The notes under the pieces: generated by a model
Told to the model about the DNA's origin: nothing
The model's database searches: none
The model's input: only the letters and a program-made list of their open reading frames with translations
Made by a program: the position numbers and the translations under genes
Shown: one piece after another, positions 4,549 to 53,521 of the stretch
Layout of the letters: each line of letters opens with the position of its first letter
Numbering within the stretch: the first letter of the stretch is position 1
Assembly (NCBI GenBank): GCA_033442325.1
Contig: JAWQFM010000004.1
Coordinates: 552,979 to 616,978 of the forward strand
DNA from: Salpingoeca rosetta
Lineage: Eukaryota; Protista; Choanoflagellata
Direction of reading: 5' to 3'
DNA: 64,000 nucleotides

Positions 4549-4625
4549 GTGGTGATGGTGGTGATGGTGGTGATGGCAATGGTGGTGGTGATAATGATGG
4601 TGTTGGTGGTGGTGGTCACGATGGC
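4477..4625 (+). repeat. (GAT)n/(GGT)n trinucleotide tract
   Basis: Directly visible; encodes Asp/Gly in the pseudogene tail frame. Confidence 0.9.
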
Positions 4626-5734
4626 GATCAATCACAACGACCCCTGCCACCCCAAAACGATGTTCCCGGTGATGGTGCTGTCGCTGAGAACAACGACTAC
4701 GGGGTCAACGGAATCAGAGGCAGCCCCCAAGACAACAACAATAACCCCAACAATAACAACAACAACCACAACATTCTTGGCAATGCCAGCTAACTTGTCT
4801 GTCTCAGCCTTGGCTAGAGTCAGGTCGCTGCTGGTGCCTTCTTGAAGGACTTAGCCAGGCTAGTGACAGTTGGGTTGGTTTGGTACGCCAGTTTGGTTGT
4901 CTTGCGTTATCGAGGGTTGCGGAATGGTTTGTTCGGTGGTCGTTTGGGCCATTGTTGTTTCGTAGCAGGTGTTGTTTGAAGTGGGTGGTGTTGGCCTGTT
5001 TTGTGTTTGTTCTGCTCCCCCCTTTCAAGTTTTGTCTGCTTCTTTGGTGGTGGTGTTGTGCAAGACTGCACAACGCCGTTTGTCATTCACACATTCCTTG
5101 CAGCTACCCAAGCTCACGTTTGGATGAATGAAGCCTTACTTGCGTGCGGGATTGCGCACGTCTGCTGATTTGCCTGTGTGTTTGATCGTTGAACCATCTT
5201 AACTTTTCCTTGGTAGAGTCTTGTGTGAGGGAATACATGCTCGCACTCAGCACGCTCGTTCTTGGTTGAGAGTGCGCGTTGCTGACAAGCTTAACCGTGG
5301 TAGTTATTGTGAACGGAAATGAAACACGTGCGTGAACCGAACAATGAAAGTCGAGAGAGAGAGAGTGTGTGTGGGGGGGGGGTGTAAATGTGCGGTTGAA
5401 CCCGTGTTGAACCCCATGTTGATGTCATGTGGATGGAAGTTCATTTGCTTGCGGGCTGATGGCTCGAAGAAGTGTGGTTGCCTTGTTGTCCTGGAAGAGT
5501 TGCCTCTACCCCAGCATGAACACGACGCGCTACACAGTTGTGGAACAGCTTCTTCCACTATCACAATGCATGTACTCGGTTGAGGGTTTGAGTCGTTTCA
5601 ATTGGAAATCAAAGAGCGGTGAGCAGCGTCAGGTGCACAGAAGGCTGTCACAGGTATGAGGGAAGGAAGCAGAAAGATGTAGAAAGGCCACAAGCGCACA
5701 CGCACATGCACGACATGTGCAAGCATCAAGCACA

Positions 5735-33960: not shown

Positions 33961-34280
33961 ACTGAAGGAAACTCAGAGGCGCCTCGGCGCGTCGCGTTTG
34001 TTGACCCAACCCTGACTTTAGGGGTGCGAAGTTCACTGAGGTTTTGTTTTTTTCTTCGAATGCACCGCTCGTTTCGTCATTTCATTTCACAAAACAGAAG
34101 ACACCACAACAACGTGTGTGTCATTGTCTCGTCACAAGCACAACACACCACACAACCACAAGAGCTTTTCTTGTTTGTGGCTGAAGCGACAACCCAAAAC
34201 ACATTCTCGCCTCAGCGCCTCGTTTTGTTCCCCAACAAAACTTGTCGACCATTCTTTCTGGAGTGGTTTGCTCTGCGACG

Positions 34281-37200
34281 ATGGGGAACCGCAAACGTAC
34301 TGACATGCGCACGGCTGCATGGCTTCGAGTCATTGCAGCAGCCATCGCTGTGTTCGCGATGCTGCAGCAAACACCACCAGCAGTATCATCCTCCGCAGGC
34401 TCTCCGTCTCCATTGCAGCGCGTGTGTCACGCCATAACGACACATTTGTCAAGCCAAGTCGAGCGTCTTGATGGCGTTTCCGGTGGCAGCCTCTCCAACT
34501 TCCAGTTTGTGACTGACGCGTGTCAGTCAGCAACGACATTCCCCATCTTCAGCGACTCCGGCTTCGTGGGTTCGCCTGTGGTGACCACTGACTTCTTGGA
34601 AAACGTTGCGGACGATAACAATGTTTCGTACGCGACGACCAAGGCTCAGCAGGTGTTCTCTCTCACGTGGGACGCGGCAACATCCACTGCCCGCGTCAAC
34701 ATCACGATCGTGCAGCAGCAGTTCCTCCGTGCCACCGTTCGGGAAGTGCTGGTCCCCGAGGACACGCCCATGATCATCGTGAGTACTCGACTAGCTGTCG
34801 TCCGCCCTGGGGCGCCCTTTGCCCCGCTGCACCTCGCGCACCTCAAGTGGCCACTGAGCGATGCCACAGCCTCGGGGTCAGGCGGCAGCGTCGTCATCGC
34901 GCGAGACCCTGATCTCCTCGACAACCAGCTGCCGACCGTGTTCATCCCCACGCCTCAGGACCCGGGCTCGCTGCCGGCAGAGACGCTCAATATCGTCCAT
35001 TCGCTGCTCGGACAACCGCACCTGCGTGTCTCATCCATGGCAGCAAGCGCGGCTGCATTCCGGGCCACTGCTCGCCGGGTCTGGCAGGCGCTGGACTTGC
35101 TGTCGCAGAAGGAGCTCAACACTGTCACGCAGAGAATCACGCGGCGAACCGTGGCCAACACCCCAACGCAGGGGCCACTTGGTGTTCTGCTGCAGCGGAC
35201 CCGCGTCTGCGCCGGTGGCACATGGCAGCCGTTCGGGGCCCAGTACGCAAAGTGCGACGACCACATCATGGAAGCGGTCAAGGGGTTTGTCTCCAAGGCT
35301 GCAGATGGGACGCCTTGCGATGGTGCTTTCGAGGTGATTGAAGACTCTGTACTGTCACACATTGCGGTGGACCTCTTTTCCTCCCAAGATGCCGTCATTG
35401 CCCAGGGCTTTCGCGCACAGACGGTTGCAACAATCAAATGCACAAGCGATGTGATTCGCCCAGGCAGCAGCGACTCCATCGTTGCATCTTTCACAATGTC
35501 CTCCAGCAACCCAACAAACAGTGCCTGGCTACTCGACTACTTCACCGACATCTCAAATCGGCTTGTCCCACTGGAAATGGTGCAGGCGTGGATGCCCACC
35601 GTTGAAGCTCAGGTGATGGGTCATCTACTCTACAAACCTGACGCGACAATGCCTGAATCAAAAGCACCGACGACAGTACACACATTCCTGCCAGGAAACG
35701 CAATCACCTCCATGTTTCCGGTTGGCGTCGCACTGGGCGACCTCGAGCTTGAGTCTTCGCAAGCAGCTGTTGCGCACGTCACGCTAGTTCTGGAGACCCT
35801 GATGACGCAACTTCAGACTGGGGTGCCAGATGTCAACACGGCTGTGCACGAGGCGCTCAAGGCTGACAAGATTGCCGACGTCGTTCAAGATTATGTTGAC
35901 CATGCCGATCACGCCACAGTGCTTGGATTTTGGTCATGGTTTCAGTCGCAGCTATCGCCTCGCACCCTCCAGCTTCAGCCATTGCTACCACCAGTGAATG
36001 ACGAGAACAACTTGGCTGCGTTTGGATTGAGCGTGAGGGTGAGCAGAACCCTCGCCATCAACAGCATCAGCTCCTCATCTCTAGCCGGCTTGTTGGCTGA
36101 TGCAAATGCTATCCTCGACTCGTTTCGGCCCCGTGCAGGCATCATATGTGGGCCGCTCGCAGCCAACTTGATCAACTGGTCGACCAACCACGTCGATGAT
36201 GCTGAATTTCAATTCAGTGCGCAGGCAACGGCCTGGGTCGGCCTCCCAGTGAACGACGACACAATCACTGTCAAAGCACTGCGAGAACACGTTGCTGGTT
36301 TCTTGCGCGTCAGTGGTTCCAGCTCCGATGACAACGAGCCGCACAAGTTTTCATTTGTTCATGACTTGAGCACTGGTGACATTGGTGGCAGGTTTATCAC
36401 TGGAAGCTACAGCGTCTCTGTCGATCCTGGACCACTAACCGACATCCAGGCCGCAAAATTGTCTTGCAGGAGCATCGCCACGGCCAGCACCATGCCGGAC
36501 GCAACCACTATGGAGCAGGCCGTAGACCTTCTCGCACAGAAGGCCACCGCGGTGGCAACTGCGCCAGTGCAGCTGAGCAACTGGCCACCAGGAGCGCTGC
36601 TCCGGCCCATCTTCGACGCCATATCGTCAGCGGTCGCCGGGCAGCATTTGCAGGAGCACAAAGCTGCGGAGCGTGTGGAGCTGGCTGCGCAGAGCACATC
36701 TAGTCCAGTGCAAGGAGTCACGGTTGTGCCCACGGCTCTTGTGAAAGACGGCAAAATCCGCCTGACTCTCAGCATCGAGCAGTTGAACACAGCCATCATC
36801 CCCGTGGACGGGAGCGCGTGGCGCGGCATCGTGGGGACAGACCGGTTCGAGACAACGGTTGTTTTGTCCTACAACATCATCGTCAGCATGCACGGCTTCA
36901 CGGCCGAGGTCCTCAGCTTTGCCGCCACTGGGGCCACGAATCTGGGCGGGTTTGTCCTTCCGACGCAACTGGGCATGCAGTTCAACAAACCCGTCACAAC
37001 GTCGCTCACCCTGAACGCTGACATGCCCAAGTCTTTCTCGGTCAACTTGCAGTTGGATGTGGCGAGTGAGTTTGGCCACCCGTTTTCCTTCCATCTCTCC
37101 AGCAGCAACCTTCCATCCAACGACGACAGTGATCAACAGCAGCAGCAGCAGCGACAGCAGCAGCAGCAGCAGCAGCGACAGCAGCCAGTGATGTTTCGCA

Positions 37201-40200
37201 TCCGCAACAGGCCTGCGTCTCAGCATGTGTCGCCTGCATCTGTGCTGGATACGATCAAGTCTGGCATCCTCAACATGGTGCCACGGGCGCTGTCAAACTC
37301 GCTCGCGTTTCTCCTTCCCCCGTATGAGAATTGGGCTGGTGATGTGTCTGAGCTGACGCGAACCATCGACATCATTACCTCGCCATTGTCCATCCTGCCC
37401 AACCCCAAACCAACTATTGCCTCCACTTTCTCATGTCTGGACAAGATCAAGGCCCAGCCTCCAACGGGCCTCAACGTCACCTTGCACTCGCCTCAGAACG
37501 AGCGCGTGTATGTCCCCCTCAACAACCTCCGCTACTCCAGCCTGACTGCCTTCACAGCCTCCATCAACAGCAACCTGCATCAGCGAACGGAAATGCGCAA
37601 GTGGCTCAAGATCGAGCTCGACCCAGACTCGCTTGTCACGCAAGGCACTGACAACTCGGACTGCGCTGTGTTTCGTGCGGTTCCTGTCACCCCAGGCGCC
37701 CTCACCTACGTTGCCATTGCCTCGACGCCTGACTCTATCCAGCAGAACTTCACGCTTCGTGGCAATTTAAACCCTGCACCAAGGCCACTTTTTGCTCACT
37801 GGGATGACCTCTTGTCCGTGATCCAGGCAGTGCTCATTCCCGACAGTGACCTGCCCAAGCTGCAACGTCTGCAAGTACCGGCCGCCGATGTGGGCGTGCC
37901 TGCCGACCTCGACCATGTGTACCCCGGCATGTTTGACGCCATTGGATTTCGGTTCGATGCCAGCTACGCATACCAGACCGCTGTAGACTCGCCCGTGAAT
38001 GACACCGTGTCTGCGCTCGGTGGCTTGCTGACAGCCTCGCTGGAGGGCGGTCGGGCATTGGCGCACCTTAACGCAACCATCTCAGCCGGCCTCTCCTTTG
38101 TTTTTGACTGCCCGCCACCAAGAGGCGGCGAGAACATCACCGTGTACTCCTCATTCTCCGACGAGGACACGCCAACAACCACAAAAGTGCGGGCCGGTGC
38201 GAACACGTTCACCCTTGACATTCAGGGTCAAATGAGGACGATGCGTGCTGGTGAAGAAGGCACCGACGCCCAAGGTCCGAGCAGTGTCCGCATTGGCCGA
38301 AGGCAGTGGACAGTTGCAGTTACGTTGGAGCCTGGAACGGTCGCGCAGGAAGCAGTGCAATCGGCGCTTGCGCAAAGTCTTCCCGAGTTTCTGCAGCCGT
38401 TTGTGCAGGTATTGCTTGGCAGGCGCACGCGACGCAGCCAGAGGGACCAGATTGCCATCCAAGTGAACCGCGCCTTCCTCGACAACGGCACCGTGTGGGT
38501 TCCAGATCTGGTGGCCATCTCTAGCAGCGAGGTGCCTTGGCTGAAAACATCGGCCTTTGGCCTGCCGCTGGTGCAAGCAATGATGAGCGATGCCAGGCTT
38601 CGTGCAACGGGCGCCCTCAGGGCCAGTGCAGATAGGGCTGAGGTGGAGGCGGGCATCCTGGCCGTTGCATCGGACAAGATTGAGGGAACCACGGACATTG
38701 ACATTGACATTGGCCTCCTCAGTCCGCCTGGCTCGCTTATCCAGCGCACTCCAAGGAGCAATCGAGACAGGAGCAACCCCACCGTCATTGGCTGGGACAC
38801 ACAATCCAACAACACAAGCAACCACATCCCGTATGAAGCGGCGCCCGATCTTGTCGATGACAGGCACTTCGCGCCACATCGCCGGAAGCGGCGTATGGTA
38901 CAGCCCTTTTCCTCGTTCACGAGCGTGACCAGGGCAAACAGCGCCCTGCGAAACGAGCACATGTTTTTCACACACTTTGATGCGAGGGTCTCGCTGAACA
39001 CGACGTTTGAGCTCTCAAATATTACCGTTGGTCTTCGACAGGTCAACGTGCAGACGACGGACGCCGCGCTGGTGCTTCAACTTACCGGTTCGTTCCACCT
39101 GAGCACAGACTTCAACGTGACGGACATGACCAGGCGCTTTGAGTTTGACGTTGACGTGCGCGGCGAGGAGGATTTTGTACAGGCAATACGGAATGTTTTG
39201 CTGGTCAACAGGTCCAGCCTGTGCCAGTTTGCACAGCGGCTGTTGGAGCCCGGAGACGGCGTTGGTGCCCAAGCGGCTGGTGTCCGGCCCCTGCCATTCT
39301 TGACAAAGTCAGTCAGCGACTGGCTTGGCCCGTATCAGCTGGCAGCGGCGCAGGCGGTTGAGGCGCTCTGCGACGGTGGCTTCAACGGCGACCTGCAAGT
39401 GCTCTGCACCGTTCTCAACGAAGCGTTTGACCAGGACGTGTGCGTCAACTCTGAACTCAGGAAGCACGAGGTTGTCATCGATCTGTACATTGTGCTTGAG
39501 GAGCAGTCCGACTCTGAGCAGTTTATCTTTGATGCAAAACTGTTTGAGCCGGTGCAGTCCTTGGAGGAGTTTTCTGTGGGTCAGGCGACAGAGGGCTCAC
39601 TGGCAGTGCAGACTCTGATTGCGTCCAACGCAACCCTCGTTATTGACATCAGCGCACCATTTCCCACGCTGTACATACGGCGTGGCAATCTGCAGCTCAC
39701 CCTCGATGTCAAGGCCATGGGCAACATAGAAGTGTATTTTGGGTCCATGTCTGTGCCGTTGTCAAGTCTGAACTTGGACATTGGCACACCAGTGAACCTC
39801 ACCATCGCCTATGGTGAGCACGAAGATGACCAGCGTATGATTCGTGCGATCCGCAGCATGGAACCAAAGCCACCACAACCAGCAGCAGCAACAGCGGCAG
39901 ACGATGAAGGCCAGCAGGGCGAGGAAGACGACCAAGCAGAAGGCCAGTGCTGGATATGGAGCACAGCGTCCATGCCGGAAGCAGACCCTGTAAATGAGTT
40001 TGAGAGACGAAGGAGGTCCACACATACGTTTCCTCTGGATGCAGGGGTGATGGCACGGCGCCCTCACCCGAGCCATCAGCTACTGCGCCGTCTGCGACGC
40101 ACACAAGCGTCTGCAGACGACGCCGGTAGTGAAGCAGGCCACCGAGAGTTTGGCATTTGTCTCAAGGGACACGCATTCCTGAATGCAAAGGTTCATGTGC

Positions 40201-43200
40201 CTTTTTCTGCGACCTGTGAGGTCGATATCAAGATTCCAGCCCTGACCAGGTTCCTACTTCAGCCAGGCCCGGACACCTTTGCCTTCAAGGCTGATGGTTG
40301 CCCACGCGGGCTGTGGCCGACCATTAGTGGCATCCTCAAGGCAGTGTTTGGGTTTCAGAACGCACTAGCAGACTTCGGGGGCATATCGCTTGCCCTCCGT
40401 TTGGCGTGGGAGCAGTTTTTGGACTTTGTGTTCTCACTTGGAGGTCTCTTGGATGGCCTGAAGCTTCCTGTGCTCGGAGACTGGTGGAAAGACATCCTGC
40501 GCATCAACTTGGGCGAGTTGTTCGACTTTACCTTTCTCAGAAAAATGTGGGACTTCATTGAGATTGGCCTCAGGGATCTCAAGTTCAGTGGCATTAGCTT
40601 CAGCTTTGCTGAGTTTGAGTTTGAGGTGCTCAAGCTCTTCACAGACGCGCTTTCGTTCCTGCTGGGGCCGTGGGCCATTGAGTTTCCAGATATCCCGTCC
40701 ATCACTCTCAAAGAGAAGCGCTGGCCCCTCAACCTCAAGCGAAGCTTCACAGCAAAGCCGGATGAGATTGGTTTTGACTTTGGTGACCATGGGGTGCTCA
40801 GCGCCGACTTTGAGTGCACACAGAAGGTCAAATTCACGTGGCACATCCAAGTTGACCTCGTGTTTTCGGGCGGAATCCGATTTGAGTTTCTGCACAACCC
40901 AGCGGTCCACGTGACGGTGCAGATGGACACGAAAGACTGCTCCCTCTCAGGCGCGTTCCTCCTTGGCGGTTTTGACATGATGGCCACTGCGTTCGTTCGC
41001 CTTGGGCTCACGGTGATCCCACCTGCGCGTACAGAGGACAAGATGTGGGACTTTGAAGCGGCTATCGAAGCAAGGTTTCGTGGCGACATGGTTGCGGGCT
41101 TTGCGGGGGTGTTTGCAGACCTGCTCGACAAGAGCAACGACGAAGCAATTCGAGCACTGCCGAACGTGCGAGCGGACTTGGACTGCGCCTTCGAGTGCGG
41201 TAGCAAGGGTTGCAGCAAGGGCCCGACGTGTCAACTGACCAGCCCTAGACTTTGTGTCGGAAGCCTGCTTCGAACAACGCTGCACCGCGCCCTGAGCTGG
41301 GTCGACAACAAGTTCTTCAAAACCGTCATTGAGGTTGTCGAGTTCCTCCAACAGGAGGTGGACCTGTCGCCCGTTCTCGACGAAATGCCTCTCGTGGATG
41401 TGCTGTACGTGATTGTGCAGAACCTGTGCACGGACAACTGCGATTTTTCCGAGGTGTATGAGATGATTGCCCAGGTAACTTACGTGGTGGACCTCATTTC
41501 CACACTTCGGGACATCGAGGACCTGCTTGAGGATGGTTCGTGCAATGCCATCACCCAGGAGCTTCCCGATATGCTGCTTGACTTCCGGGACGACATCCTT
41601 GAGCCCAAGGTGATGGGACCCCCGCCCGTGAAGCAGCTCAACTTCAAGAGCGGCGACCGCTTGCCCCGGGCCAAGCAGGAGGTCGTGCGGAAGGTCTGGT
41701 CTGACATGACAACGCAGGGCTCTTTTGGTGTCAGGCTTTCGTTTCTCGACAACCCCGTGCTGAACGTGGTCAAGATGTTACTTGGCCAGGTCGTCGATCT
41801 CGTGGAGTTTACCTTCCCGCGACTGGTGATTGGCATTGGCGTTTCCTGGACCATCCCCATCTGGTCTGTCCCGTTGGTTGAGATTGAGCCCACGTTCTCG
41901 TTTGAGATCCAGGCGCAGCCGCCACCGCTCATCATCACAACGGAAACGGCAGTCACACTGCTTCAGACCGGCGACATTGGGTCCACCTTGGGCACGGTTG
42001 CGATTCGAACGGTTGACCGCGCAACCCACAAGCCAATTAACTTCCTTGTTGCGCGGGGTTCCATCGGCGCCTACGTCCGCGTGTCAATTGGCGTGTACTT
42101 TGCATATGTTCAAGGGTCCTTCTACTTGGGGCTCACACTGGAGGCGGCGGTGGCCATTCCCGACATTTACCACACCGGGCGCATCACCATCGGTGACATG
42201 TATCAGTTGGTCAAGTACAACGACGGTAACGTCTTCAAGTCACTGGATCGCCGTTACACGCTGTTTTTGGACGCGGGATTCAGTCTTCGAGCCTGCATTA
42301 ACCTGCTGTTTTACCGCAAGTGCTGGACCATTGTCGCGTGGTCTCATTCGTTCACGCTCTGGGAACGGCTTGACAGGGCGCGCGTGTTTCCCATCCCAAC
42401 CAGCGGTACGGGAAACATCAACATTGGATCGTCGTTCTCACAGCCATATCGCCGTCGGTCCGTGGTCAGGCGGTGCGCGGGCGCTTGCGTGTCCATGGCG
42501 CAGTTCACGCTCTCGCAGGCCAGGGACACGGTCACAGTGGCGGTGAAGACGCCCGATGACGGTGTGAACGAGGCGCCGCGCACAGGGTCGCTTCCCGCCG
42601 ACGGTAGCTGCATCCGGTTCACAGGCAGCTCACACAATAGCGCGCTCAAGGTCCGAGTGGTGGGTGTGTTCAGGTGCGTCCATGTCCCGGCGCTACCTGG
42701 CTCCCACATTGAGATTTCACAGCAGTCGTATGGCGTGTCTTCCAGCCAAGCTGCGCACGGAGCTTCAACCACACACATCTCAGACTCAACGACGCACACC
42801 CTGGTTCGCAGGCGCCGTCAAGCATTGGCCGACACGGTGTTTCCGCGATCTGTGAATGCGACAAGGCGAGCGCCCGTGCAAGTGTTTCGGATCACTCGCA
42901 GCGCAGTCCTGCCCTTGTTTGCAGCCGGGATCGTTTTTAGTGACGAGGGCATGGACCTGCCAAACCGGCGCCGCAGTGTGCGCATGGCCGGGGGCAGACG
43001 GGAGAGTGCAGTGCTGAGCTGCACGTCCTTGCAGCTCACCGACCCACTTCCCCAGGCTCATTTCATCGTGACGGGGACGCCATGCCAAACGGAAGCCCTG
43101 GTCTCTGGCACCCAGACTGTGGGCTTGTACGGGCATCCAGGGCAGATCAATCTGCGGGTCATTGGACAAACCAAGCGGTTCATCATGAATCTCAAGGCAT

Positions 43201-46200
43201 CGCGAATTGTGCTGTCGAGCCAGTACGTTATGGCGGACGGGTATGAGACCCCTTTCACGAAACCGCCTGCGGAGTTGATGGTGAAAGGTCAGGCGTCGAA
43301 TGACGGGTCTGTGGAAGTTTTGGATGTGCCACAAGGCATGTCCATGACGTTTCAGGGCAGTCGAGGCATCCTGGATGTCTTTGTCCCGGACATTCAGCGT
43401 GTGAATGGACTGCTCGTGATTCGCGGTGCAGCCACAGGCTCCGTGAACCGGCTTCGGATTGCGGCCCGCGCCCGGCGTGGGGAGACCCCCTACATAACGG
43501 TGACTTCTGGCCTCTTCAGCCAGAACACAAGCACAGGTTTGCGCCAAGTGGAGCACGCGAACATTAACGACAAGACCTTGGACCTGCATGTTGAAGACGG
43601 CGCGACGGCGGAGACTTCGCTTTTGTCCTCAGAACGGTTTGCGTTTGCGGCTGTGCGTTCGGTAGCAGAGCTTGGGGCAACAGCAACGCATCGCGTCACG
43701 GGCTGCCAGGACCCAACATCTGCACATCGGTACACACTGGAAGGACCGGGCAATCAGCAGCTCATCATCGGCTCTGGCGATCTGGAAAGGTTCAATTGCT
43801 ACATTGATGTGCAAGGAGTTCAGGACTCACCATCTACGGACCAGAACTACACAATCATAGTGGACGCCGGGTATGACACACGGGACTTGTCGTGGTCATT
43901 CTTCAATGGCGGACTTCGGGTTGCGTCCAGGGAATCCCTGGCAAGCCAGCAGCTGCACATTGCCATGCAGAACATCGACCACGTGTACGTCCGCTTTGGA
44001 AACAAGAGCAACGCGGTTCTGTTCACCGAAGCTGACAACACGGCCGACTATGTGCTCAACTTTGAGAGCTCTGGTCCAGTGAATCGAAACACGATCAGCT
44101 TTGCCACCCTCTCACGTGGCGTGCTCGTGCTTGGCACGGTGTCTTTGCGCATCGAGAAGCAGGGCTCTTTAGACCATGCACCGTTCTCACGCATTCAGGC
44201 GTCGATTGTAAGCCTGCGAGACAGGTCACACGAGTCGCTGGAGGGGCGTGTGGTTGTGACGGCTGGAGTTGACGCGGCAAGCCAGCACATTGTGCTGCAC
44301 ACGGACCGCTGTATCTCTCCGGCTGCTGTTGGAGGCGAGGCTGGCACGCCCGCCGAAATCAATGCTGGCCTGACAGAGTGGGTGCTCATGCATGCTGTGG
44401 CACGCGGCTTTGACCCTGGCTTTGACATGAGCCACTGTCATGTGTACCAAGGAGGCCGAGCTCGGGTCGACGTGACGCTGACTCGTGGCGAGGACAGCTT
44501 GTACGTGCACCGGTTTGGCCTGCCCGTGCAGGCTGAGCTGCTGGATGGTGAGGACACGTTTGTTTATGCCAACGCCAACAGCAGCACTTCCTTCGACGTC
44601 AACACCGGGCGTGGGAACGACCATGTGATGGTTGAGTGTGAGTTCGCGTCATCTCGGCTGGACTTTGGGTCCAATGACGACTTGGATTCTTTTTGGCTGT
44701 TTGCGAATGGGGTGACACCGGAGCTACTGTCCTCGGCGGAGGTGCGACCAGTGAGGAGTGAGGATGCGACATCGGCGCTTTCGTTTGTGCACCAGAATGG
44801 CGCGGTGCTCCACTTTTATCCGTGGGGACGAGAAGACAGCGGTCAGCGGAAGACCCGATCGCTGGCAACGCACAGAGCAGCACGCAGCACTCTGGCAGCC
44901 TCCTCAGTGGGTTCTGCAATGGCATGGTTTCCCGGAAACAACACGGTGATCCGGGTCTCGTTTCCAGACGAGAACCGCGTCGTGTTCATCGAGCCACAGA
45001 GCCGCTGCTCGTATGTGGTGGAGAACCTTGGGGCCGGATCTATACTGCGTGTCGGTGAGCAACCCAACGCACAGCGGAGATTCTCCCGTGATTCTTCGCA
45101 GAAGGCCGCCACACGGGAGGGCCGATCTAGCGGCGTATTCACAGACGACAGCCAAGGGACGCCGAAAGACTGGCAAGTCATTTCCGCACTTCAGGACCTG
45201 AGTGCGCCCGCAACCATTCAGGTCATAGGACAAGAGAAGAGCAACCTCACAGTGTGCATGATTGTGCCACGACAACGCGACCTGCGAAACGTGCGCACAC
45301 TTCGCTTCGATGAGCTTGACTCGGGAGCAGCGCGTCTGTCGCTGGGGTCGAACGCGATGCAGGTGGTCAACGCGAGGCACGTTGCGTTGCTTGCTGAAGG
45401 CAATGCCCGCTTCGAGCTGCAGTCCTCCATCTCGGGCGTGGACCTTGTTGTTGCGGCCAGGGAGCCCTCGAACCTTATAGCTCAGCCTGACACGGTACTG
45501 CAGAATCCAATTCAGCTGTACAACGTGACGGCTAGCCTGCCAACGGCGGCGCTTCTGGGCGCAGGTCGTGTGATTGTCAGTGGTGATGAAACTGGGTTGG
45601 TCACCGCCCTGCCCAGCAACAACGTCACTGTGGAAGGGGGCTGCCTCTTGGTGTTGCACCCCGCTGATGGGCAGCCACTCGTGCCTTCCCCGCTTTCACC
45701 TTGGGCTCTCGCATGGGCACAGATGCTTCTGCCTCCCTCCACGTTTGAGCGCATTGCGGATGACCCATGCTTTGGCTTGTTTCCCGACTCAAATCATCAT
45801 CTCCCCATCAGCAATGTCGAGTCTACCCGCATCACGGACGTGCGAAGGCACTTCACGACCATGGCATTCTCGCCGGCGGCTACGGTTGAACTACGTGACA
45901 CGACTCCACTGTCACACGTTCTGCTGCACGAAGACCACGTCAGTATTGACAATGGCGCGTACACGGTGCAATTTGGGAGTGAGCCGTCACGCTCGGCAGC
46001 CCAGCGGCAAGTGCGGCTCATGAGCCCAGTGCTCCGAAATGAGAGTGCTGTTGTTCAACTGCCCGCAGGTGCAGATTGTTCTCGCTCGCCGCAGACGCTC
46101 TTTGAAACATTGTATGACAGCGAACACGACTTGTTGCACAGGCATCACATTGGGTTGCGAACGGCCACAGGGGGTATGTTGTCAAGTTCTCTCACGTTCC

Positions 46201-48491
46201 CAAGCTCCACACAGCGCCTTGAGCTTGACCTGTCGCTGCTGTCGATGTCAGGCTGCCTGTCGAGCGCAAACGTGTCGCTTTCTGGGCCGTTCCTGACTGA
46301 AACGAGCGGAGCAGCGCGTGTAAGCGACACGGCACGCAGCAAGGTGTCGACAGAGAGTCAATCAGTTCAACGCCCTTCTGCAAGAAGTACCAAAGAACAA
46401 ACAACTACCGTGCCTGCCGTGCCTGCCGCTGCTGCAGGCTCATCCACGCTGCAAGGCGCATTGTTGGTCACTGTTGGGGCTGACCGTGTGCGGTTTGATA
46501 ACTCCACAACCAACCACAACTTCACCGTGAACCTGGGACCAGCACATGACATGCTCCAGTTGGGAGTTGTTATTGAACAAGGTGCGGTACAGGTGGACTT
46601 TATGTCCGCGCCTGTGGCTCAGTGGACCGAGCCTTTGCAGCTGCGGGTGTCAGATACTGCGCAGGCGGAGCTGATGTTGCCACTGAACGCGACCCTACGT
46701 CTGTCGCAGCAGGAGGTATGCTGGCACAAAAACATGTCGTTCGTGTCGCATGGCGAGGCGGTTGGCACTGGCTGGACAGACGGAGCGCTGGTGAACCTTG
46801 CTAAGGACTGCAGCCGGCTTGCGCTGGAGAGGTTGAGTTTGCTGGATCACATGAGCTGCGTGTCCCCCAGCGACAGCGATAGCAAGATCACAGCCATGGT
46901 TCGCCTCTCCACAGCCCACAAGCTGTACTGTAGCATCGAGGGCGACATGGTGCGCGTGGGCGTTGGTTGCCAAGTGAGCACCGCGAGCTCACACAGTAGC
47001 GCGCAGGCTTGGAATACCACCTGGACTGTCTTGTTTTGGGTGGTGTTGGCTTCGCACATGGTGTTTGTGTGCCGATTTGCGCTCACTTTCCTAAGGAACG
47101 TGGCCGACGGGGTGGTGAACGCTGAATTAGGAGATAACACGCTGTCCCACCGTAGCGCACTTGCCAGCGGTACGTCTGTGTTGTACTTTGGCCTCATCTT
47201 TGCGGGATGCCTTCTGCCGATTGTTGAGGAGGGGAGCTCTGAGCAGACACGCGGGTTTGTTCTCGGGGTGGCTGAGGCTGTTCGCTCTGCAGGCGGCATT
47301 GCAGACTCGTACGTGGGAAACGAGCGTGCAAGCACAGCAAATGACATGGCCAACGCTGGAGTGGGCCTGGTGGGAGGAGGGTTTGTCTTGGCTGCTGTTT
47401 TGCAGCTGAGGGCTGTGACACAACTGAGGTACCGTGTTGTGGCGGTTGCCTGCGTCAGTGAGCTGCTGTGCGCTGTGTTCCTGCCATGGGCTGTGCTGAA
47501 CAGCGCAGGCAACACAGTTGGCGTTTCCTGCGTGCTTGGTGTACTATTGATTGTAACTAAGACGAGGTTGTATGCACGGCGAGCGGTGTGTGCACGGCAA
47601 GCGGATGGGCGTAGAGCACATGCAAATAACAGTTGTAAGAGCATGGTCACTCTCGCTTGTTGGCCTCTAATGGATGGACTCTCAAAGATCCTGCTGCTGA
47701 TTGCTTGCGCTGCAGCCAGGCCTGCGTCAAATGTCACAAGCAGCGGCATGCTCGGCGGCGCTGAAGTTCTGCTCCTGTTGTATCATATCAGCATCATGGG
47801 GGGAATCGTACTCTGCATGCGCTCTTCAACGCAACGTGGCTGCTGGGGACTGATGTTGACAACGGCTATGGCCTACGCGCTTGGTGTGAGCGCCTTGGCT
47901 GTCATGCCCGGCCCCACCAGCATGGTCGTGTTGTATTTCTGGTGGATGGGGCTGACTGCAGTAGCTGTCATGGTTGTCTGCGCTTTGCTGTGGCCGTTTC
48001 AAGATTTTAGACAGAACGGCGCAGACGGGTATGTGTGGGACGACGAAGAGCCCACTGGGGACCACGACAATGGTAACCAAAGGCACCATCAACACAACAA
48101 CATGCCAAATCAGGGCCCGGTTGTGGAACACGCGGACGTGGAGGACGATGATGACCATGAAGAGGAGGACACACAGGTTGAGAACGTGTTTGTTGAACCA
48201 GATCAGCAGCTGAGCCAACGCAGAAGCGGAACTGAGTTGCAACTATTCAGACATGAGACAGAAGGAACCCCCCAAACAGGTAGTAGTCGTCACGACAGCA
48301 GTGGCCACGCTGCTGGTGACAGCAGAACCTCCTCCAACTCGAATCCTGTGAGCCCAGCTGGTGACCAGACAAGCAACGCAAGCTCCGACGACCAGCCAAG
48401 CGACGCAATCTCCGAACACCAGCCAAGTGACACACTCCGAAGACACCAGAAACTCCCCCTCGATTCCACTCCAACCAACACTGATGTCTGA
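34281..48491 (+). CDS. Giant (~4,740 aa) intronless membrane protein: signal peptide, huge beta-rich ectodomain, ~9 C-terminal TM helices, acidic cytoplasmic tail
   Basis: 14.2-kb uninterrupted ORF with first ATG at 34281. Hydrophobic N-terminus WLRVIAAAIAVFAML; TM cluster at ~47010-48000. Confidence 0.9.
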   Translation: MGNRKRTDMRTAAWLRVIAAAIAVFAMLQQTPPAVSSSAGSPSPLQRVCHAITTHLSSQVERLDGVSGGSLSNFQFVTDACQSATTFPIFSDSGFVGSPVVTTDFLENVADDNNVSYATTKAQQVFSLTWDAATSTARVNITIVQQQFLRATVREVLVPEDTPMIIVSTRLAVVRPGAPFAPLHLAHLKWPLSDATASGSGGSVVIARDPDLLDNQLPTVFIPTPQDPGSLPAETLNIVHSLLGQPHLRVSSMAASAAAFRATARRVWQALDLLSQKELNTVTQRITRRTVANTPTQGPLGVLLQRTRVCAGGTWQPFGAQYAKCDDHIMEAVKGFVSKAADGTPCDGAFEVIEDSVLSHIAVDLFSSQDAVIAQGFRAQTVATIKCTSDVIRPGSSDSIVASFTMSSSNPTNSAWLLDYFTDISNRLVPLEMVQAWMPTVEAQVMGHLLYKPDATMPESKAPTTVHTFLPGNAITSMFPVGVALGDLELESSQAAVAHVTLVLETLMTQLQTGVPDVNTAVHEALKADKIADVVQDYVDHADHATVLGFWSWFQSQLSPRTLQLQPLLPPVNDENNLAAFGLSVRVSRTLAINSISSSSLAGLLADANAILDSFRPRAGIICGPLAANLINWSTNHVDDAEFQFSAQATAWVGLPVNDDTITVKALREHVAGFLRVSGSSSDDNEPHKFSFVHDLSTGDIGGRFITGSYSVSVDPGPLTDIQAAKLSCRSIATASTMPDATTMEQAVDLLAQKATAVATAPVQLSNWPPGALLRPIFDAISSAVAGQHLQEHKAAERVELAAQSTSSPVQGVTVVPTALVKDGKIRLTLSIEQLNTAIIPVDGSAWRGIVGTDRFETTVVLSYNIIVSMHGFTAEVLSFAATGATNLGGFVLPTQLGMQFNKPVTTSLTLNADMPKSFSVNLQLDVASEFGHPFSFHLSSSNLPSNDDSDQQQQQQRQQQQQQQRQQPVMFRIRNRPASQHVSPASVLDTIKSGILNMVPRALSNSLAFLLPPYENWAGDVSELTRTIDIITSPLSILPNPKPTIASTFSCLDKIKAQPPTGLNVTLHSPQNERVYVPLNNLRYSSLTAFTASINSNLHQRTEMRKWLKIELDPDSLVTQGTDNSDCAVFRAVPVTPGALTYVAIASTPDSIQQNFTLRGNLNPAPRPLFAHWDDLLSVIQAVLIPDSDLPKLQRLQVPAADVGVPADLDHVYPGMFDAIGFRFDASYAYQTAVDSPVNDTVSALGGLLTASLEGGRALAHLNATISAGLSFVFDCPPPRGGENITVYSSFSDEDTPTTTKVRAGANTFTLDIQGQMRTMRAGEEGTDAQGPSSVRIGRRQWTVAVTLEPGTVAQEAVQSALAQSLPEFLQPFVQVLLGRRTRRSQRDQIAIQVNRAFLDNGTVWVPDLVAISSSEVPWLKTSAFGLPLVQAMMSDARLRATGALRASADRAEVEAGILAVASDKIEGTTDIDIDIGLLSPPGSLIQRTPRSNRDRSNPTVIGWDTQSNNTSNHIPYEAAPDLVDDRHFAPHRRKRRMVQPFSSFTSVTRANSALRNEHMFFTHFDARVSLNTTFELSNITVGLRQVNVQTTDAALVLQLTGSFHLSTDFNVTDMTRRFEFDVDVRGEEDFVQAIRNVLLVNRSSLCQFAQRLLEPGDGVGAQAAGVRPLPFLTKSVSDWLGPYQLAAAQAVEALCDGGFNGDLQVLCTVLNEAFDQDVCVNSELRKHEVVIDLYIVLEEQSDSEQFIFDAKLFEPVQSLEEFSVGQATEGSLAVQTLIASNATLVIDISAPFPTLYIRRGNLQLTLDVKAMGNIEVYFGSMSVPLSSLNLDIGTPVNLTIAYGEHEDDQRMIRAIRSMEPKPPQPAAATAADDEGQQGEEDDQAEGQCWIWSTASMPEADPVNEFERRRRSTHTFPLDAGVMARRPHPSHQLLRRLRRTQASADDAGSEAGHREFGICLKGHAFLNAKVHVPFSATCEVDIKIPALTRFLLQPGPDTFAFKADGCPRGLWPTISGILKAVFGFQNALADFGGISLALRLAWEQFLDFVFSLGGLLDGLKLPVLGDWWKDILRINLGELFDFTFLRKMWDFIEIGLRDLKFSGISFSFAEFEFEVLKLFTDALSFLLGPWAIEFPDIPSITLKEKRWPLNLKRSFTAKPDEIGFDFGDHGVLSADFECTQKVKFTWHIQVDLVFSGGIRFEFLHNPAVHVTVQMDTKDCSLSGAFLLGGFDMMATAFVRLGLTVIPPARTEDKMWDFEAAIEARFRGDMVAGFAGVFADLLDKSNDEAIRALPNVRADLDCAFECGSKGCSKGPTCQLTSPRLCVGSLLRTTLHRALSWVDNKFFKTVIEVVEFLQQEVDLSPVLDEMPLVDVLYVIVQNLCTDNCDFSEVYEMIAQVTYVVDLISTLRDIEDLLEDGSCNAITQELPDMLLDFRDDILEPKVMGPPPVKQLNFKSGDRLPRAKQEVVRKVWSDMTTQGSFGVRLSFLDNPVLNVVKMLLGQVVDLVEFTFPRLVIGIGVSWTIPIWSVPLVEIEPTFSFEIQAQPPPLIITTETAVTLLQTGDIGSTLGTVAIRTVDRATHKPINFLVARGSIGAYVRVSIGVYFAYVQGSFYLGLTLEAAVAIPDIYHTGRITIGDMYQLVKYNDGNVFKSLDRRYTLFLDAGFSLRACINLLFYRKCWTIVAWSHSFTLWERLDRARVFPIPTSGTGNINIGSSFSQPYRRRSVVRRCAGACVSMAQFTLSQARDTVTVAVKTPDDGVNEAPRTGSLPADGSCIRFTGSSHNSALKVRVVGVFRCVHVPALPGSHIEISQQSYGVSSSQAAHGASTTHISDSTTHTLVRRRRQALADTVFPRSVNATRRAPVQVFRITRSAVLPLFAAGIVFSDEGMDLPNRRRSVRMAGGRRESAVLSCTSLQLTDPLPQAHFIVTGTPCQTEALVSGTQTVGLYGHPGQINLRVIGQTKRFIMNLKASRIVLSSQYVMADGYETPFTKPPAELMVKGQASNDGSVEVLDVPQGMSMTFQGSRGILDVFVPDIQRVNGLLVIRGAATGSVNRLRIAARARRGETPYITVTSGLFSQNTSTGLRQVEHANINDKTLDLHVEDGATAETSLLSSERFAFAAVRSVAELGATATHRVTGCQDPTSAHRYTLEGPGNQQLIIGSGDLERFNCYIDVQGVQDSPSTDQNYTIIVDAGYDTRDLSWSFFNGGLRVASRESLASQQLHIAMQNIDHVYVRFGNKSNAVLFTEADNTADYVLNFESSGPVNRNTISFATLSRGVLVLGTVSLRIEKQGSLDHAPFSRIQASIVSLRDRSHESLEGRVVVTAGVDAASQHIVLHTDRCISPAAVGGEAGTPAEINAGLTEWVLMHAVARGFDPGFDMSHCHVYQGGRARVDVTLTRGEDSLYVHRFGLPVQAELLDGEDTFVYANANSSTSFDVNTGRGNDHVMVECEFASSRLDFGSNDDLDSFWLFANGVTPELLSSAEVRPVRSEDATSALSFVHQNGAVLHFYPWGREDSGQRKTRSLATHRAARSTLAASSVGSAMAWFPGNNTVIRVSFPDENRVVFIEPQSRCSYVVENLGAGSILRVGEQPNAQRRFSRDSSQKAATREGRSSGVFTDDSQGTPKDWQVISALQDLSAPATIQVIGQEKSNLTVCMIVPRQRDLRNVRTLRFDELDSGAARLSLGSNAMQVVNARHVALLAEGNARFELQSSISGVDLVVAAREPSNLIAQPDTVLQNPIQLYNVTASLPTAALLGAGRVIVSGDETGLVTALPSNNVTVEGGCLLVLHPADGQPLVPSPLSPWALAWAQMLLPPSTFERIADDPCFGLFPDSNHHLPISNVESTRITDVRRHFTTMAFSPAATVELRDTTPLSHVLLHEDHVSIDNGAYTVQFGSEPSRSAAQRQVRLMSPVLRNESAVVQLPAGADCSRSPQTLFETLYDSEHDLLHRHHIGLRTATGGMLSSSLTFPSSTQRLELDLSLLSMSGCLSSANVSLSGPFLTETSGAARVSDTARSKVSTESQSVQRPSARSTKEQTTTVPAVPAAAAGSSTLQGALLVTVGADRVRFDNSTTNHNFTVNLGPAHDMLQLGVVIEQGAVQVDFMSAPVAQWTEPLQLRVSDTAQAELMLPLNATLRLSQQEVCWHKNMSFVSHGEAVGTGWTDGALVNLAKDCSRLALERLSLLDHMSCVSPSDSDSKITAMVRLSTAHKLYCSIEGDMVRVGVGCQVSTASSHSSAQAWNTTWTVLFWVVLASHMVFVCRFALTFLRNVADGVVNAELGDNTLSHRSALASGTSVLYFGLIFAGCLLPIVEEGSSEQTRGFVLGVAEAVRSAGGIADSYVGNERASTANDMANAGVGLVGGGFVLAAVLQLRAVTQLRYRVVAVACVSELLCAVFLPWAVLNSAGNTVGVSCVLGVLLIVTKTRLYARRAVCARQADGRRAHANNSCKSMVTLACWPLMDGLSKILLLIACAAARPASNVTSSGMLGGAEVLLLLYHISIMGGIVLCMRSSTQRGCWGLMLTTAMAYALGVSALAVMPGPTSMVVLYFWWMGLTAVAVMVVCALLWPFQDFRQNGADGYVWDDEEPTGDHDNGNQRHHQHNNMPNQGPVVEHADVEDDDDHEEEDTQVENVFVEPDQQLSQRRSGTELQLFRHETEGTPQTGSSRHDSSGHAAGDSRTSSNSNPVSPAGDQTSNASSDDQPSDAISEHQPSDTLRRHQKLPLDSTPTNTDV

Positions 48492-48510
48492 CTGCGGTTG
48501 ACATGCCGAG

Positions 48511-48511
<1 letters not shown>

Positions 48512-48578
<67 letters not shown>
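48512..48578. repeat. (GT)n microsatellite next to the retrotransposon 3' end
   Basis: Directly visible. Confidence 0.95.
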
Positions 48579-48581
<3 letters not shown>

Positions 48582-48624
48582 CGTAGTGCATGCGTGATTA
48601 TGTGTGTTTTGTGTTTGTATTCGA

Positions 48625-51600
48625 TTGGTTTATTGGGGAAAACTCGCTGAAATCTTACACTGCTCCCAGCGCTCAGAGATGGGGAAAGCAATTGCGGCAA
48701 AACAAGGGGCAGCGGTGTGCATGGGCGAATGTGTGTGAGAGCACGCGCCTCATAGACAGAAAGAAAAGTGAATCAATAGATAGATAGAAACCAAGTGCCT
48801 CGGTGCGAGGCTCATGTGTAGTGCTGCGACTGTCGCTTAGACAGTCGCAGGGGGCTCTGTTGCGGCCGGGCCACCGGGGCTTCGTGAGGTCGCGGGGGCG
48901 CTGCGTGGCTGTCCCTCATCGTTGTCGGTGGTGGCGGTGGCAGCGGCGGTGGCAGCAGTGCCGTTGTTGCTGTCATTGCTGCGCTGGCCGTTGTGGCCGG
49001 GGGGTGTGGTCTGCGGATGCTTGCGCTTGCGGGTGCGCTTGCCCTGTTGGTGGTTGCGCTGGGCTTGAGCGCGCGCTCGTTGTACCGTCTGGGTGCTCTG
49101 GCGGGGAGTGTGTGTGTCTCCCGCCCGGACCGAGCCCGGCTGATTTTTGCCCCGCTTGTCGTGAGGCATCTGGCCGATGCACCGGAGGTTCGCGTAGCAC
49201 TCAGCCTTGCATCTCGCGATGGACAACACTTGCCGCCAGTACGTGCTGCTGTGCATGGAGGTAAAGGTGCGCACGTGTGGTGGTGTTTGTGGGTCCGTCG
49301 TGGACATAAGGTCGCTGCTGAAGAACTTCCGGAACTTCGAGCCCCAGGCGCCCGAGCCAGCCTCGATCGCAATCGGCACAAATTTGAAGTCGCCCTGATC
49401 GCGTAGGATGGCCTGGTACTTCTTGATCTTGCGTTGTTCCGCCTGCGACGCCGCGTAGAGGTTGACTTTGGCGGCCTGTGGTTGGTACGAGCTGGCCGCG
49501 GGGGCGGCGAACACGAGGTCAAACACGGTGTAATCGCCAGACTTGTCGAAGCTGAGGATGTCACCGCGCTTGCCGCCTGCGCCTGGGAAGCCGGAGGGCT
49601 CTTGTGTCGCGCGGCGGTTGAGCTGCATGAAGGCCCGGGAGATGGCGTTCTGCATGTAGTCGTGCCGGCCCGTCTTCGTGGAGTCGCAGACTTCGGCGTG
49701 GTCCAGCTTCATCTCGCGCCCGCAGCAGTAGCAGCTGCCTGATGCACGCGACTCGGAGCAAGGTGTCCGAATCCGCTGGCTCAGAGCAAACCGAAACACC
49801 TTGTCCGACATCCGCAGGTCCTTGCAGCTGGGCAGGGCCAGGAGCCACTCGTAGCCGCCGTGCAGGCTGGCTCCTCGTTGAATGGCTCGGTTGCGTGGGT
49901 TCTCGTCCCAGCCCGTCTTCCTGTCCATGATCTGGGTCAGGAACTGCTGCAAGCTGCGAGCGTCGTGGTTTAGAACGTCCCTCGTGTCGCGGGGGCCGTC
50001 GTCGCCGAGGTGCAGATCCGCGATGGCTTGTGCTATCTCCGCCTCCAACTCGGCGCCCGGCGTGGTGTATGCTTGGAAAGGGTGGTGGGGGCTCTTGCTG
50101 AAGCTGCAGACGGAGCCGAGGAAGGCGGCGGGGGCGACGCTTGTCTGCCTCCGTAGCCCAAGGCCTCCTTGTTTGATGGGTCGTCGTGCCCGCGTCAGGG
50201 CCCGCGATGACAGGGGCTTGAAGGCGCCCATCATGCGCCGAAGCTGCTCCGCGATAATGTCGTCGAGCGCTTCGCAGTACTCCTTCGACCGACGGGTCGT
50301 GCGCATGAAGTAGCCGGAATTGGTCGTGATGCAGTACCGAAGGAACTGGAAGACCAGTTGCGCCGGCAAGTGGGCGCTCGCCAGGTCGAGAGCCCTCCGT
50401 GTCTCGTCGAGGTGGGATGCCTCGTATGGCCCGAAGAGGGGGACGCCCAGCACTTTCGCGGTCTGGTCGCCGTAGGGGATGACGACCGTCTTGTCTTCAT
50501 TGATCTTCAGCCCCGTCCGGCGGATCTCCGTGTCGAGCCGCTCCGCGGCCGCCTTGACGTCATCGCGCGGGCCAACGATGTAGGTGTCATCGAGGTACGC
50601 GACGACGGTGACCGTGGGGTGGGCCTTGTCGGTTTCCTTCAGCGCGTGGATCGTGGCAAGGGCAAAATACGCCGGTGAGAGCGGACCGCCCTGCGCGATG
50701 CCATCGCGCATGTGGAGGGTGTCGCCACCCGGTGTGACGACGACCGGTGCCTGGCCGTACGTCGCCAGGAAGCAATGTGCGAGGCTCGGGAAGCGGCGGC
50801 TGATGGCGTCGTAGATTGAGCGTCGCGTCACCGCCCCAAAGGCGTTGGAGATGTCGAGCGCCTGCGCCACGTGGTCCCGGTGGGCCCGCAGGTACTCACG
50901 CAGGCCATGCACGATGCACTCTGTGCCGGCGGGGATGCCGACGCCGAGTTGGTGCGGGCATAGGGCGTCGGCGATCTCGGCCTTGTGCGCGCTGAAGACC
51001 GTCTTCTCCAGGAGCTTGGCGATGCTGTCCATGGGGACCACAGGTCGGATGCCGCCATTGCTCTTCGTCAGCGGCACCACGCGTCCACCCATGAGGAGTG
51101 GCATGCGCTTCCGAAACTTGCCATGATACAGCGCGTTGACCAGCTTCGGCAGGGATGCTCCGTGCTCGTGCAGCTGCGCCAGGGTCGCGGGCGTGAGCCC
51201 GGTGGCGCCCGCCGCCGCCTGCCTGTCCAGCGTGTACAGCGCATCCGTGATCTTTTCTGCCGGGAGATCGTCGATGGTGGTTCTGGCGAGTGGCCCGTCG
51301 CCGCCAGCGTCGCCGCCGCTGTTGTCGTCGCCCCTGCTGGGCAGGCCTGCGCTGCCTGTCGTGATGATCTTCTGCTTCACCTGCTCCTTGATGTCGTCGC
51401 TCCACTCCGCGACGGAGGCGGTGTCGCGGAGGATCGAGTGGCCTTTGGACATTTGCCCAGCTCGAAACCGCTTCGCCGCCGCCCGTGCTTTCGCCCGGTC
51501 TCCTGTGGCCGGGCGTCCGCTGGGCTTCCGCGTCACACTCTCCTCCAGCTCGTCCCACTCCCGTGCGGCTAGCATCCGCATTCGTGCCAGCGTCGTGTTC

Positions 51601-53120: not shown

Positions 53121-53521
53121 AGTGAGTGAGTGAGTGAGTGAGTGTGTGTGTGTGTGTTGTGTTGTGTGCTGTGTATCCACATGGCACAAGAGCAACTGAA
53201 TTCAGTCACACTCGTATTTCATGTATGTAGTCAACACTTTTCATTTCAAAAACTTTTCCTTTTCGCTCGAGGTCGCATCTCCCAACACATCCAGTGACCC
53301 ACGCACCTCAGATCATAGCAGCATCGCAACAAGGTCAGGTCACTACTGCCTGCACGTGTGTTTCTCTGTCTCCTTTGTCCCATGTGAGGTTGAGCACCCA
53401 CACTCCCAACTAAAGCCCCTCTTCTCTCTCTCTCTCTCTCCAGGTCATCCTTGAAGCCAGATCGCACTTTCGAGGCTCCGGGCGCTTACACACACACACC
53501 AACACACCACCAGCACCAACC

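Follow-up and report, generated by a model that had tools for sequence, protein, structure and literature searches.

The stretch of DNA analysed here (the window) comprises 64,000 nucleotides (nt) of contig JAWQFM010000004.1 from the choanoflagellate Salpingoeca rosetta. The gene in question, PTSG_02609 (XP_004996106.1), occupies 14.2 kb of its plus strand, at window positions 34281–48491. A frame without stops extends from 34242 to 48491, and its first ATG, at 34281, opens a run of 4,736 codons that is followed by a stop. As the plus strand carries a mean of 0.0215 stops per codon over the whole window, about 102 stops would be expected over the length of PTSG_02609, and the natural logarithm of the probability of meeting none is about -103. 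The second-longest frame in the window encodes 1,452 amino acids (aa) and comes from a retrotransposon just downstream. The PTSG_02609 product consists of a signal peptide, an ectodomain of about 4,200 aa, nine hydrophobic helices and an acidic tail (Table 1), and it retains all residues that are invariant in its family. PTSG_02609 is a real, intact and constrained gene, without introns in the intron-dense genome of its host.

The public model of PTSG_02609 differs from this one-exon reading. With 4,667 aa it is 69 residues shorter, as it excises one piece of 30 nt and one of 177 nt, each in-frame and free of stops. We think that both annotated introns are annotation artefacts, because both pieces encode residues that homologues retain. 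In the alignment, the residues encoded by the 177-nt piece are retained also in the sequence from S. infusionum, which is derived from transcripts. A first-pass annotation of the window had called the gene intronless and had assigned a signal peptide and about nine transmembrane helices to its product. The DNA bears out the former with a single stop-free frame, and a hydropathy scan found an N-terminal hydrophobic segment and nine hydrophobic peaks. The four sequence motifs that this annotation had singled out are also present, at aa 1670, 2057, 2486 and 3440.

Searches of Pfam and NCBIfam with six overlapping pieces of the protein, together with a sequence search of the PDB, gave no match anywhere in PTSG_02609. 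Comparison of its parts with hhalign identified an internal repeat, in which module F and the membrane-proximal part (G) aligned with 96.9% probability (E 1.3e-10, 244 columns), revealing a repeated Cys-containing module at aa ~3130–3420. The same method found no internal repeat among blocks A, B and D.

Table 1. Features of PTSG_02609, with positions counted from the first letter of the window.
Feature	Residues (aa)	Window positions	Strand	Basis
Complete coding sequence, one-exon reading	4,736 plus stop	34281..48491	+	frame scan; N-terminus matches N-termini of homologues
Probable signal peptide, hydrophobic core aa 11–29 after basic residues	1–37	34281..34391	+	hydropathy scan
N-terminal region, weakly conserved, eukaryotic homologues only	40–800	34398..36680	+	phmmer; no Pfam match
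Blocks A (aa 800–1500) and B (aa 1530–1860), conserved and collinear across the eukaryotic family	800–1860	36678..39860	+	phmmer
Gln-rich low-complexity run	952–968	37134..37184	+	sequence
Eukaryote-specific helical sub-domain	1950–2139	40128..40697	+	AlphaFold (helices at model residues 62–179); no bacterial match
30-nt 'intron' of the public model		40191..40220	+	in frame, no stop; encodes a Cys retained in most homologues
Domain D, long beta-hairpins and helices, common with giant bacterial RTX proteins, not in Pfam	~2140–2750	40698..42530	+	profiles, AlphaFold
Motif within domain D, best-conserved stretch between eukaryotes and bacteria	2486–2515	41736..41825	+	column-by-column alignment
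Degenerate EF-hand-type calcium loop in domain D	2628–2639	42162..42197	+	alignment
Module F, Cys-containing, GGxGxD-type motifs on its flanks	2900–3510	42978..44810	+	family consensus
RTX-like motif block, holding the motif at aa 3440	3383–3455	44427..44645	+	weak profile matches to bacterial RTX regions
Membrane-proximal ectodomain, with second copy of the F module	3511–4246	44811..47018	+	hhalign
Membrane module, nine hydrophobic helices	4247–4576	47019..48008	+	hydropathy, alignment, AlphaFold
177-nt 'intron' of the public model		47538..47714	+	in frame, no stop; encodes parts of two membrane helices retained in homologues
Acidic, His- and Ser-rich tail of 160 residues, probably cytoplasmic	4577–4736	48009..48488	+	sequence; no Pfam match

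An exhaustive HMMER search with aa 1641–2740 against 1.84 billion representatives returned 77 matches, 30 of them below E 1e-30. Thirty of the 77 were looked up, and the ten that carry the name of an organism are all from protists. The named holders are the S. rosetta paralogue PTSG_11386, S. infusionum, Choanoeca perplexa, Monosiga brevicollis, Capsaspora, Thecamonas, Balamuthia and two Naegleria species. Relatives without an organism name lie on contigs with eukaryotic neighbours (RabGAP, eIF4E, filamin, protein kinase), and on four such contigs the gene is three times as long as its protein, which indicates that these relatives are single-exon genes too. The short matches to the family are fragments on short contigs. 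Whole-protein comparison with phmmer showed that similarity to the relatives is collinear over aa ~800–3500, through blocks A, B, D and F. A cluster of 7–9 hydrophobic helices forms the C-terminal end of most full-length relatives. With these collinear blocks, its signal peptide and its C-terminal helix cluster, PTSG_02609 falls within an unnamed family of the PTSG_02609 / CAOG_08011 / NAEGRDRAFT_52947 type.

The paralogue PTSG_11386 (XP_004987623.1) is 39–40% identical to PTSG_02609 over the core, collinear over aa 248–4362, nearly intron-free and equipped with the same membrane module, whereas it lies on another contig (2233355–2236414) and its public model is partial. The proteins of S. infusionum, Choanoeca perplexa, Monosiga (A9VCF2), Capsaspora (CAOG_08011), Thecamonas (AMSG_10070), Balamuthia (QOT17_000772) and Naegleria (NAEGRDRAFT_52947) share the signal peptide and the A/B/D/F layout; they differ in being 20–33% identical to PTSG_02609, and they are uncharacterised. 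Whereas most relatives have a C-terminal helix cluster, a crude hydropathy scan detected one such helix or none in the Naegleria models. The full architecture, including the membrane module, was found in Amoebozoa, Apusomonadida, Filasterea, Heterolobosea and other choanoflagellates. As the collinear layout recurs over distant protists, the architecture of the family is old and inherited whole. No characterised eukaryotic family matches over the full length, and the literature, searched by locus tags and DUF4347, yielded no account of the protist family. Querying word-indexed protein collections with the core, or with its alignment, returned the query only or nothing, which is a weak test, as they missed the 40%-identical paralogue too. 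A 4,277-aa family member lies beside RabGAP, eIF4E and ELAPOR-like genes on gut metagenome contigs, indicating that an intestinal protist carries the family; from the two gut loci, the gene tables and one protein entered the analysis.

Look-alikes of the core, found by language-model and structure comparison, belonged to unnamed clusters labelled cyanobacterial and planctomycete. Bacterial genomes were reached via a 16S pattern, and a core profile built from eukaryotic sequences only (alignment A1) was run over samples of whole phyla. Matches were found in 34 of 401 genomes of Cyanobacteriota (best E 1e-35), 17 of 401 of Pseudomonadota (1e-28), 4 of 401 of Planctomycetota (7e-17) and 2 of 251 of Chloroflexota (4e-30), and in 1 of 251 genomes from the phylum of a 'Deltaproteobacteria' metagenome-assembled genome (3.5e-31). 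All bacterial matches lie within open frames of 2,000–15,000 aa. The five frames that were checked against Pfam contain 4–17 HemolysinCabind repeats plus DUF4347, FG-GAP, Calx-beta, laminin-G or PA14, and the matched stretch itself has no Pfam model. PTSG_02609 gives a significant profile match to this domain with the conserved motifs aligned, and its aa 2486–2515 can be aligned residue by residue with the bacterial sequences. These comparisons show that domain D and an unannotated domain in giant secreted bacterial proteins of the RTX type are homologous. The first-pass annotation had noted a likeness to giant RTX or calcium-binding proteins of Cyanobacteria and Planctomycetes, and this likeness is genuine homology, given the E-values in both phyla and the RTX repeats in the frames.

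Domain D is also plasmid-borne, both in WP_010999685.1 of Nostoc sp. PCC 7120 and in genes, including some of other cyanobacteria, labelled just 'calcium-binding protein' or 'DUF4347 domain-containing protein'. On plasmid alpha of Nostoc sp. PCC 7120 (115305–135368), the giant domain D gene adjoins an NB-ARC gene and a gene for a large P-loop NTPase.

The part shared with bacteria is confined to a minority of the ectodomain. Segment profiles run against ten bacterial frames gave a strong match for aa ~2140–2750 only (100–112 bits), so that the strong bacterial match takes in about 600 residues of an ectodomain of ~4,200. Blocks A and B matched bacterial frames weakly, with the best values (E 3.6e-9 and 2.2e-7) in a cyanobacterial frame of 3,969 aa, and the RTX-like block at aa 3383–3455 weakly matched bacterial RTX regions (independent E-value 2e-5). 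In the ten frames there was no match for the N-terminal 800 aa, aa 1950–2140, aa 3500–4240 or the membrane module. The first-pass annotation had made its proposal depend on bacterial matches for residues ~1600–3500. Such matches exist, strong for domain D and weak for the RTX-like block; aa 1950–2140 had none, and the motif at aa 2057 falls outside the bacteria-shared part. Module F, searched in five bacterial genomes that bear domain D, gave weak RTX-like matches only; in one proteobacterial frame such a match (E 1.5e-4) lies downstream of domain D, collinear as in PTSG_02609.

The giant RTX proteins of bacteria (e.g., Nostoc WP_010999685.1) and the eukaryotic family thus have in common domain D, with a length of 520–600 aa, an EF-hand loop, downstream GGxGxD motifs and a very large size. 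The bacterial proteins are set apart by numerous true PF00353 repeats, by further adhesin domains and by the lack of a membrane module, whereas the eukaryotic proteins have a signal peptide, a nine-helix anchor of their own and no RTX score in Pfam. Where RTX proteins are characterised by a C-terminal type I secretion signal and export via an ABC/MFP/TolC system, PTSG_02609 ends in its membrane module and tail. An AlphaFold model of aa 1950–2740, based on a 30-row alignment, reached a predicted local distance difference test score (pLDDT) of 82 and shows a helical bundle and, after it, sheets built from very long hairpins, with helices in between. Nothing convincing was found for this model in the PDB (best E 0.011 in Foldseek; in VIA-align, a best Z of 7.2 for outer-membrane barrels), and a search of the Atlas returned unnamed clusters only. 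We do not claim a barrel fold for the core.

Two maximum-likelihood trees of domain D, both unrooted, were built from eukaryotic and bacterial sequences. The first has 60 rows and 535 columns and excludes rows with less than 50% of the columns filled. The second has 59 rows and 394 columns with five bacterial phyla, and excludes rows less than 55% filled and ten near-identical cyanobacterial rows. In both trees, all 30 eukaryotic rows are found on one side of one branch (Shimodaira–Hasegawa-like approximate likelihood ratio test, SH-aLRT, 99), and the bacterial phyla, on the opposite side, are intermixed with one another. PTSG_02609 groups with its paralogue PTSG_11386, then with S. infusionum and then with other choanoflagellate-like rows. 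As all eukaryotic rows lie on one side of one well-supported branch, any transfer was single and ancient. The trees indicate one event, long ago, by which eukaryotes acquired or came to share the bacterial-type part, and this part did not arrive in S. rosetta itself. A direction from bacteria to eukaryotes is favoured, because the domain is spread over bacterial phyla in varied architectures and because the eukaryotic genes lack introns.

It is unlikely that the domain moved from protists to bacteria, or that it stems from a very old common stock. Unrooted trees with a clean split between eukaryotes and bacteria would suit such a history, as would the age and diversity of the eukaryotic family itself. 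However, five or more bacterial phyla possess the domain, the architectures around it vary and the tree does not separate these phyla, whereas the eukaryotes have a single invariable architecture, scattered unevenly among phagotrophs. The lack of introns throughout the family also suits a bacterial source.

The first-pass annotation had proposed the recent horizontal acquisition of a bacterial surface body, fused to a eukaryotic multipass module to give this lineage a new receptor for sensing or prey capture. We consider this improbable, and its recent timing is largely refuted already. The bacterial homology of the core is real, the gene lacks introns in an intron-dense genome, as would be expected of a recent arrival, and the two paralogues differ in how they respond to which bacteria the culture contains (Table 2). 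Yet the other marks of a recent transfer, absence from related eukaryotes and nesting within bacteria, were not found. The whole architecture is collinear in Amorphea and Naegleria, with the full set of parts in the four groups outside the choanoflagellates listed above, and PTSG_02609 lies deep inside the choanoflagellate group, with the eukaryotes as one group in both trees. Most of the ectodomain, moreover, has no bacterial match, and the protein shows no signalling domain and no G-protein-coupled receptor (GPCR) or transient receptor potential (TRP) fold. A graft specific to the S. rosetta lineage is thus not what these data describe.

Expression of PTSG_02609 depends on cell type. In the supplement of Fairclough et al. 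2013 (PMC4054682), the gene has a log2 fold change of 5.4 for Attach/Colony (P 1.8e-21) and of 8.4 for Attach/Swim (P 4.3e-23), and PTSG_11386 is likewise specific to attached cells. The attached-cell sample from 2011 with 956 reads on PTSG_02609 is SRX042052. PTSG_02609 is transcribed specifically in thecate (attached) cells and nearly silent in swimmers and colonies, so that transcription, on which the first-pass annotation had made its proposal depend, is documented. The two paralogues are reciprocal in attached cells, with PTSG_02609 peaking in cultures with Algoriphagus only and PTSG_11386 in mixed-prey cultures, at one sample per condition (PMC4054682). File 11 of the same supplement bears the label 'upregulated in colonial cells'. 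Its columns, however, give Attach/Colony and Attach/Swim fold changes, and all values are positive. File 11 therefore lists thecate genes, and its legend seems to have been exchanged with that of file 12.

Table 2. Expression of the two S. rosetta paralogues by cell type, from PMC4054682, in reads and in fragments per kilobase of transcript per million mapped reads (FPKM).
Sample	PTSG_02609 reads	PTSG_02609 FPKM	PTSG_11386 FPKM
Attached, Algoriphagus only (AtA)	956	12.7	0.10
Attached, mixed prey (AtB)	56	0.96	3.5
Attached, mixed prey + Algoriphagus (AtAB)	21	0.36	10.2
Swimmers (SwB)	1	0.017	0.22
Rosettes (CoA1)	0	0	0.038
Rosettes (CoA2)	35	0.52	0.018
Rosettes (CoAB)	1	0.013	0.08
Chains (ChB)	0	0	0

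We favour, with moderate confidence, the reading that PTSG_02609 is a stage-specific, calcium-dependent giant surface adhesin that carries one ancient bacterial-type domain and belongs to an unnamed intronless protist family. The signal peptide would bring ~4,200 residues of the PTSG_02609 glycoprotein outside the cell, and the nine-helix module would hold it in the membrane, mainly as an anchor. The ectodomain would form a long surface fibre, probably stiffened by calcium like its bacterial relatives, and this fibre would attach the thecate cell to the substrate, the theca or bacteria. We infer the adhesion role and the calcium dependence by analogy; a role as an attachment fibre is suggested because the gene is expressed in substrate-attached cells, with the bacterial giants as a model. 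LapA and SiiE are type-I-secreted giant adhesins, and they serve as a functional analogy only.

The calcium motifs vary within the family, most of whose members have an EF-hand calcium loop in domain D. The EF-hand loop of domain D is canonical (DxNGDGK..xxE) in bacteria and in Balamuthia, Naegleria and Capsaspora. In PTSG_02609 the canonical form (DxNGDGKxxxxE) is absent; the loop reads DIYHTGRITIGD, in which positions 3 and 5 are no calcium ligands. The family consensus contains several degenerate GGxGxD motifs over aa 2900–3510, and PF00353 (HemolysinCabind) gave no match in PTSG_02609 (E <= 1), in 25 family members or in the whole genome (E <= 0.01).

Several points weigh against the adhesin reading. 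Since the EF-hand loop is degenerate here and the Pfam RTX model scores in none of the family members, calcium binding may be weak or lost in PTSG_02609. Adhesion would be an analogy for all members, whether eukaryotic or bacterial. Peak expression is modest, at 12.7 FPKM in one sample (PMC4054682), and three RNA-seq runs from 2026, each about one quarter read, gave zero reads on 42700–48499; the sole run that covers the whole stretch looks like DNA. The blank in the 2026 runs would be explained if those runs came from non-thecate cell types. With regard to the origin of domain D, unrooted trees show a single event and not its direction. Finally, the model of the membrane module has low confidence (pLDDT 66) and draws ten helices for nine hydropathy peaks, and nine helices are more than anchoring requires, a hint of some additional role.

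We strongly doubt that PTSG_02609 acts mainly in the endolysosomal or phagosomal system, with its giant domain in the lumen, where it would meet ingested bacteria. The named holders of the family are all phagotrophs, and a Tyr-x-x-hydrophobic motif of the sorting type is found at an aligned position, 10–20 residues past the last helix, in 8 of 23 relatives (at the very C-terminus in two). However, the S. rosetta tail has the non-canonical GYVWD at this position (window 48027–48053, aa 4583–4591), and swimmers and colonies feed too, yet expression is specific to attached cells.

We give even less credence to the nine-helix module as a channel or transporter that is gated, mechanically or by calcium, via the ectodomain in the style of polycystin-1. 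The surplus of helices in a conserved module would be in line with such a role, and polycystin-1 and ADGRV1 resemble PTSG_02609 in their signal peptide, very large ectodomain and C-terminal multipass block. However, the module matches no channel or transporter family in Pfam, its sequence conservation among relatives is just 16%, and fold searches with its model remained at noise for helical bundles, with a best Z of 9.8 to a soluble helical protein and Z 6–8 for membrane proteins. The hallmarks of polycystin-1 and ADGRV1 (GAIN/GPS, PKD, REJ, Calx-beta, 7TM and PKD-channel) have no Pfam match in PTSG_02609. 

Two specific assignments of the membrane module were rejected. A GPCR or adhesion GPCR is at odds with the lack of a 7TM or GAIN/GPS match in Pfam, with nine to ten helices and with a Z of 6–7 to the GPCR/rhodopsin fold. 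For a polycystin or TRP-like channel, there was no Pfam match to PKD_channel, ion-transport, REJ or PKD, and no such fold match, the latter being a weak test with a low-confidence model. As no fold rose above noise and the tail has no signalling domain by Pfam, the receptor idea of the first-pass annotation, for which a GPCR or TRP-like fold had been considered, finds no support.

There is next to no chance that PTSG_02609 is a gene in decay or a relic without function: the blank in the three 2026 runs and a degenerate EF-hand loop would fit such a gene, but 14.2 kb free of stops where ~102 are expected, the retention of every invariant family residue and transcription regulated by cell type make this very unlikely already.

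Some further observations concern the linkers of the protein and the DNA behind the gene. The protein contains seven R-x-K/R-R motifs, versus 1.4 expected, at positions including aa 1382, 1534, 1909, 1937, 2843 and 3063, mostly in weakly conserved linkers. Relatives have this motif at matching linkers, near aa 1909 in two proteins and near aa 2830 in S. infusionum. These sites may allow convertase-type cleavage that releases a fragment with domain D. Directly 3' of the stop codon, the terminus of a repeat lies together with (GTT)n and (GT)n microsatellites at window positions 48500–48699, where many RNA reads that originate elsewhere in the genome stack. The 1,452-aa retrotransposon frame follows the microsatellites on the minus strand (48837–53195).

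Our analysis uncovered a domain of ~600 residues, without a Pfam model, that connects giant proteins secreted by bacteria of five or more phyla with giant membrane proteins of many protists, and a family of protist giants without a Pfam or NCBIfam model. PTSG_02609 has no intron over 14 kb, and its relatives show the same in genomes rich in introns, which makes a clean case for studying why some genes resist intron gain. In a broader view, which we hold to be quite unlikely as a whole, the family would be the attachment apparatus of sessile or amoeboid phagotrophs, its domain would have been taken once from bacterial RTX giants, and the two S. rosetta paralogues would be alternatives chosen by the bacteria present. 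If this is true, the paralogues serve in attachment or recognition and are tuned to the community of bacteria around the cell. Few molecules of the thecate cell type have been described. As S. rosetta is a genetically tractable relative of animals, PTSG_02609 and PTSG_11386 provide two strong candidates for what holds the thecate cell to its substrate.

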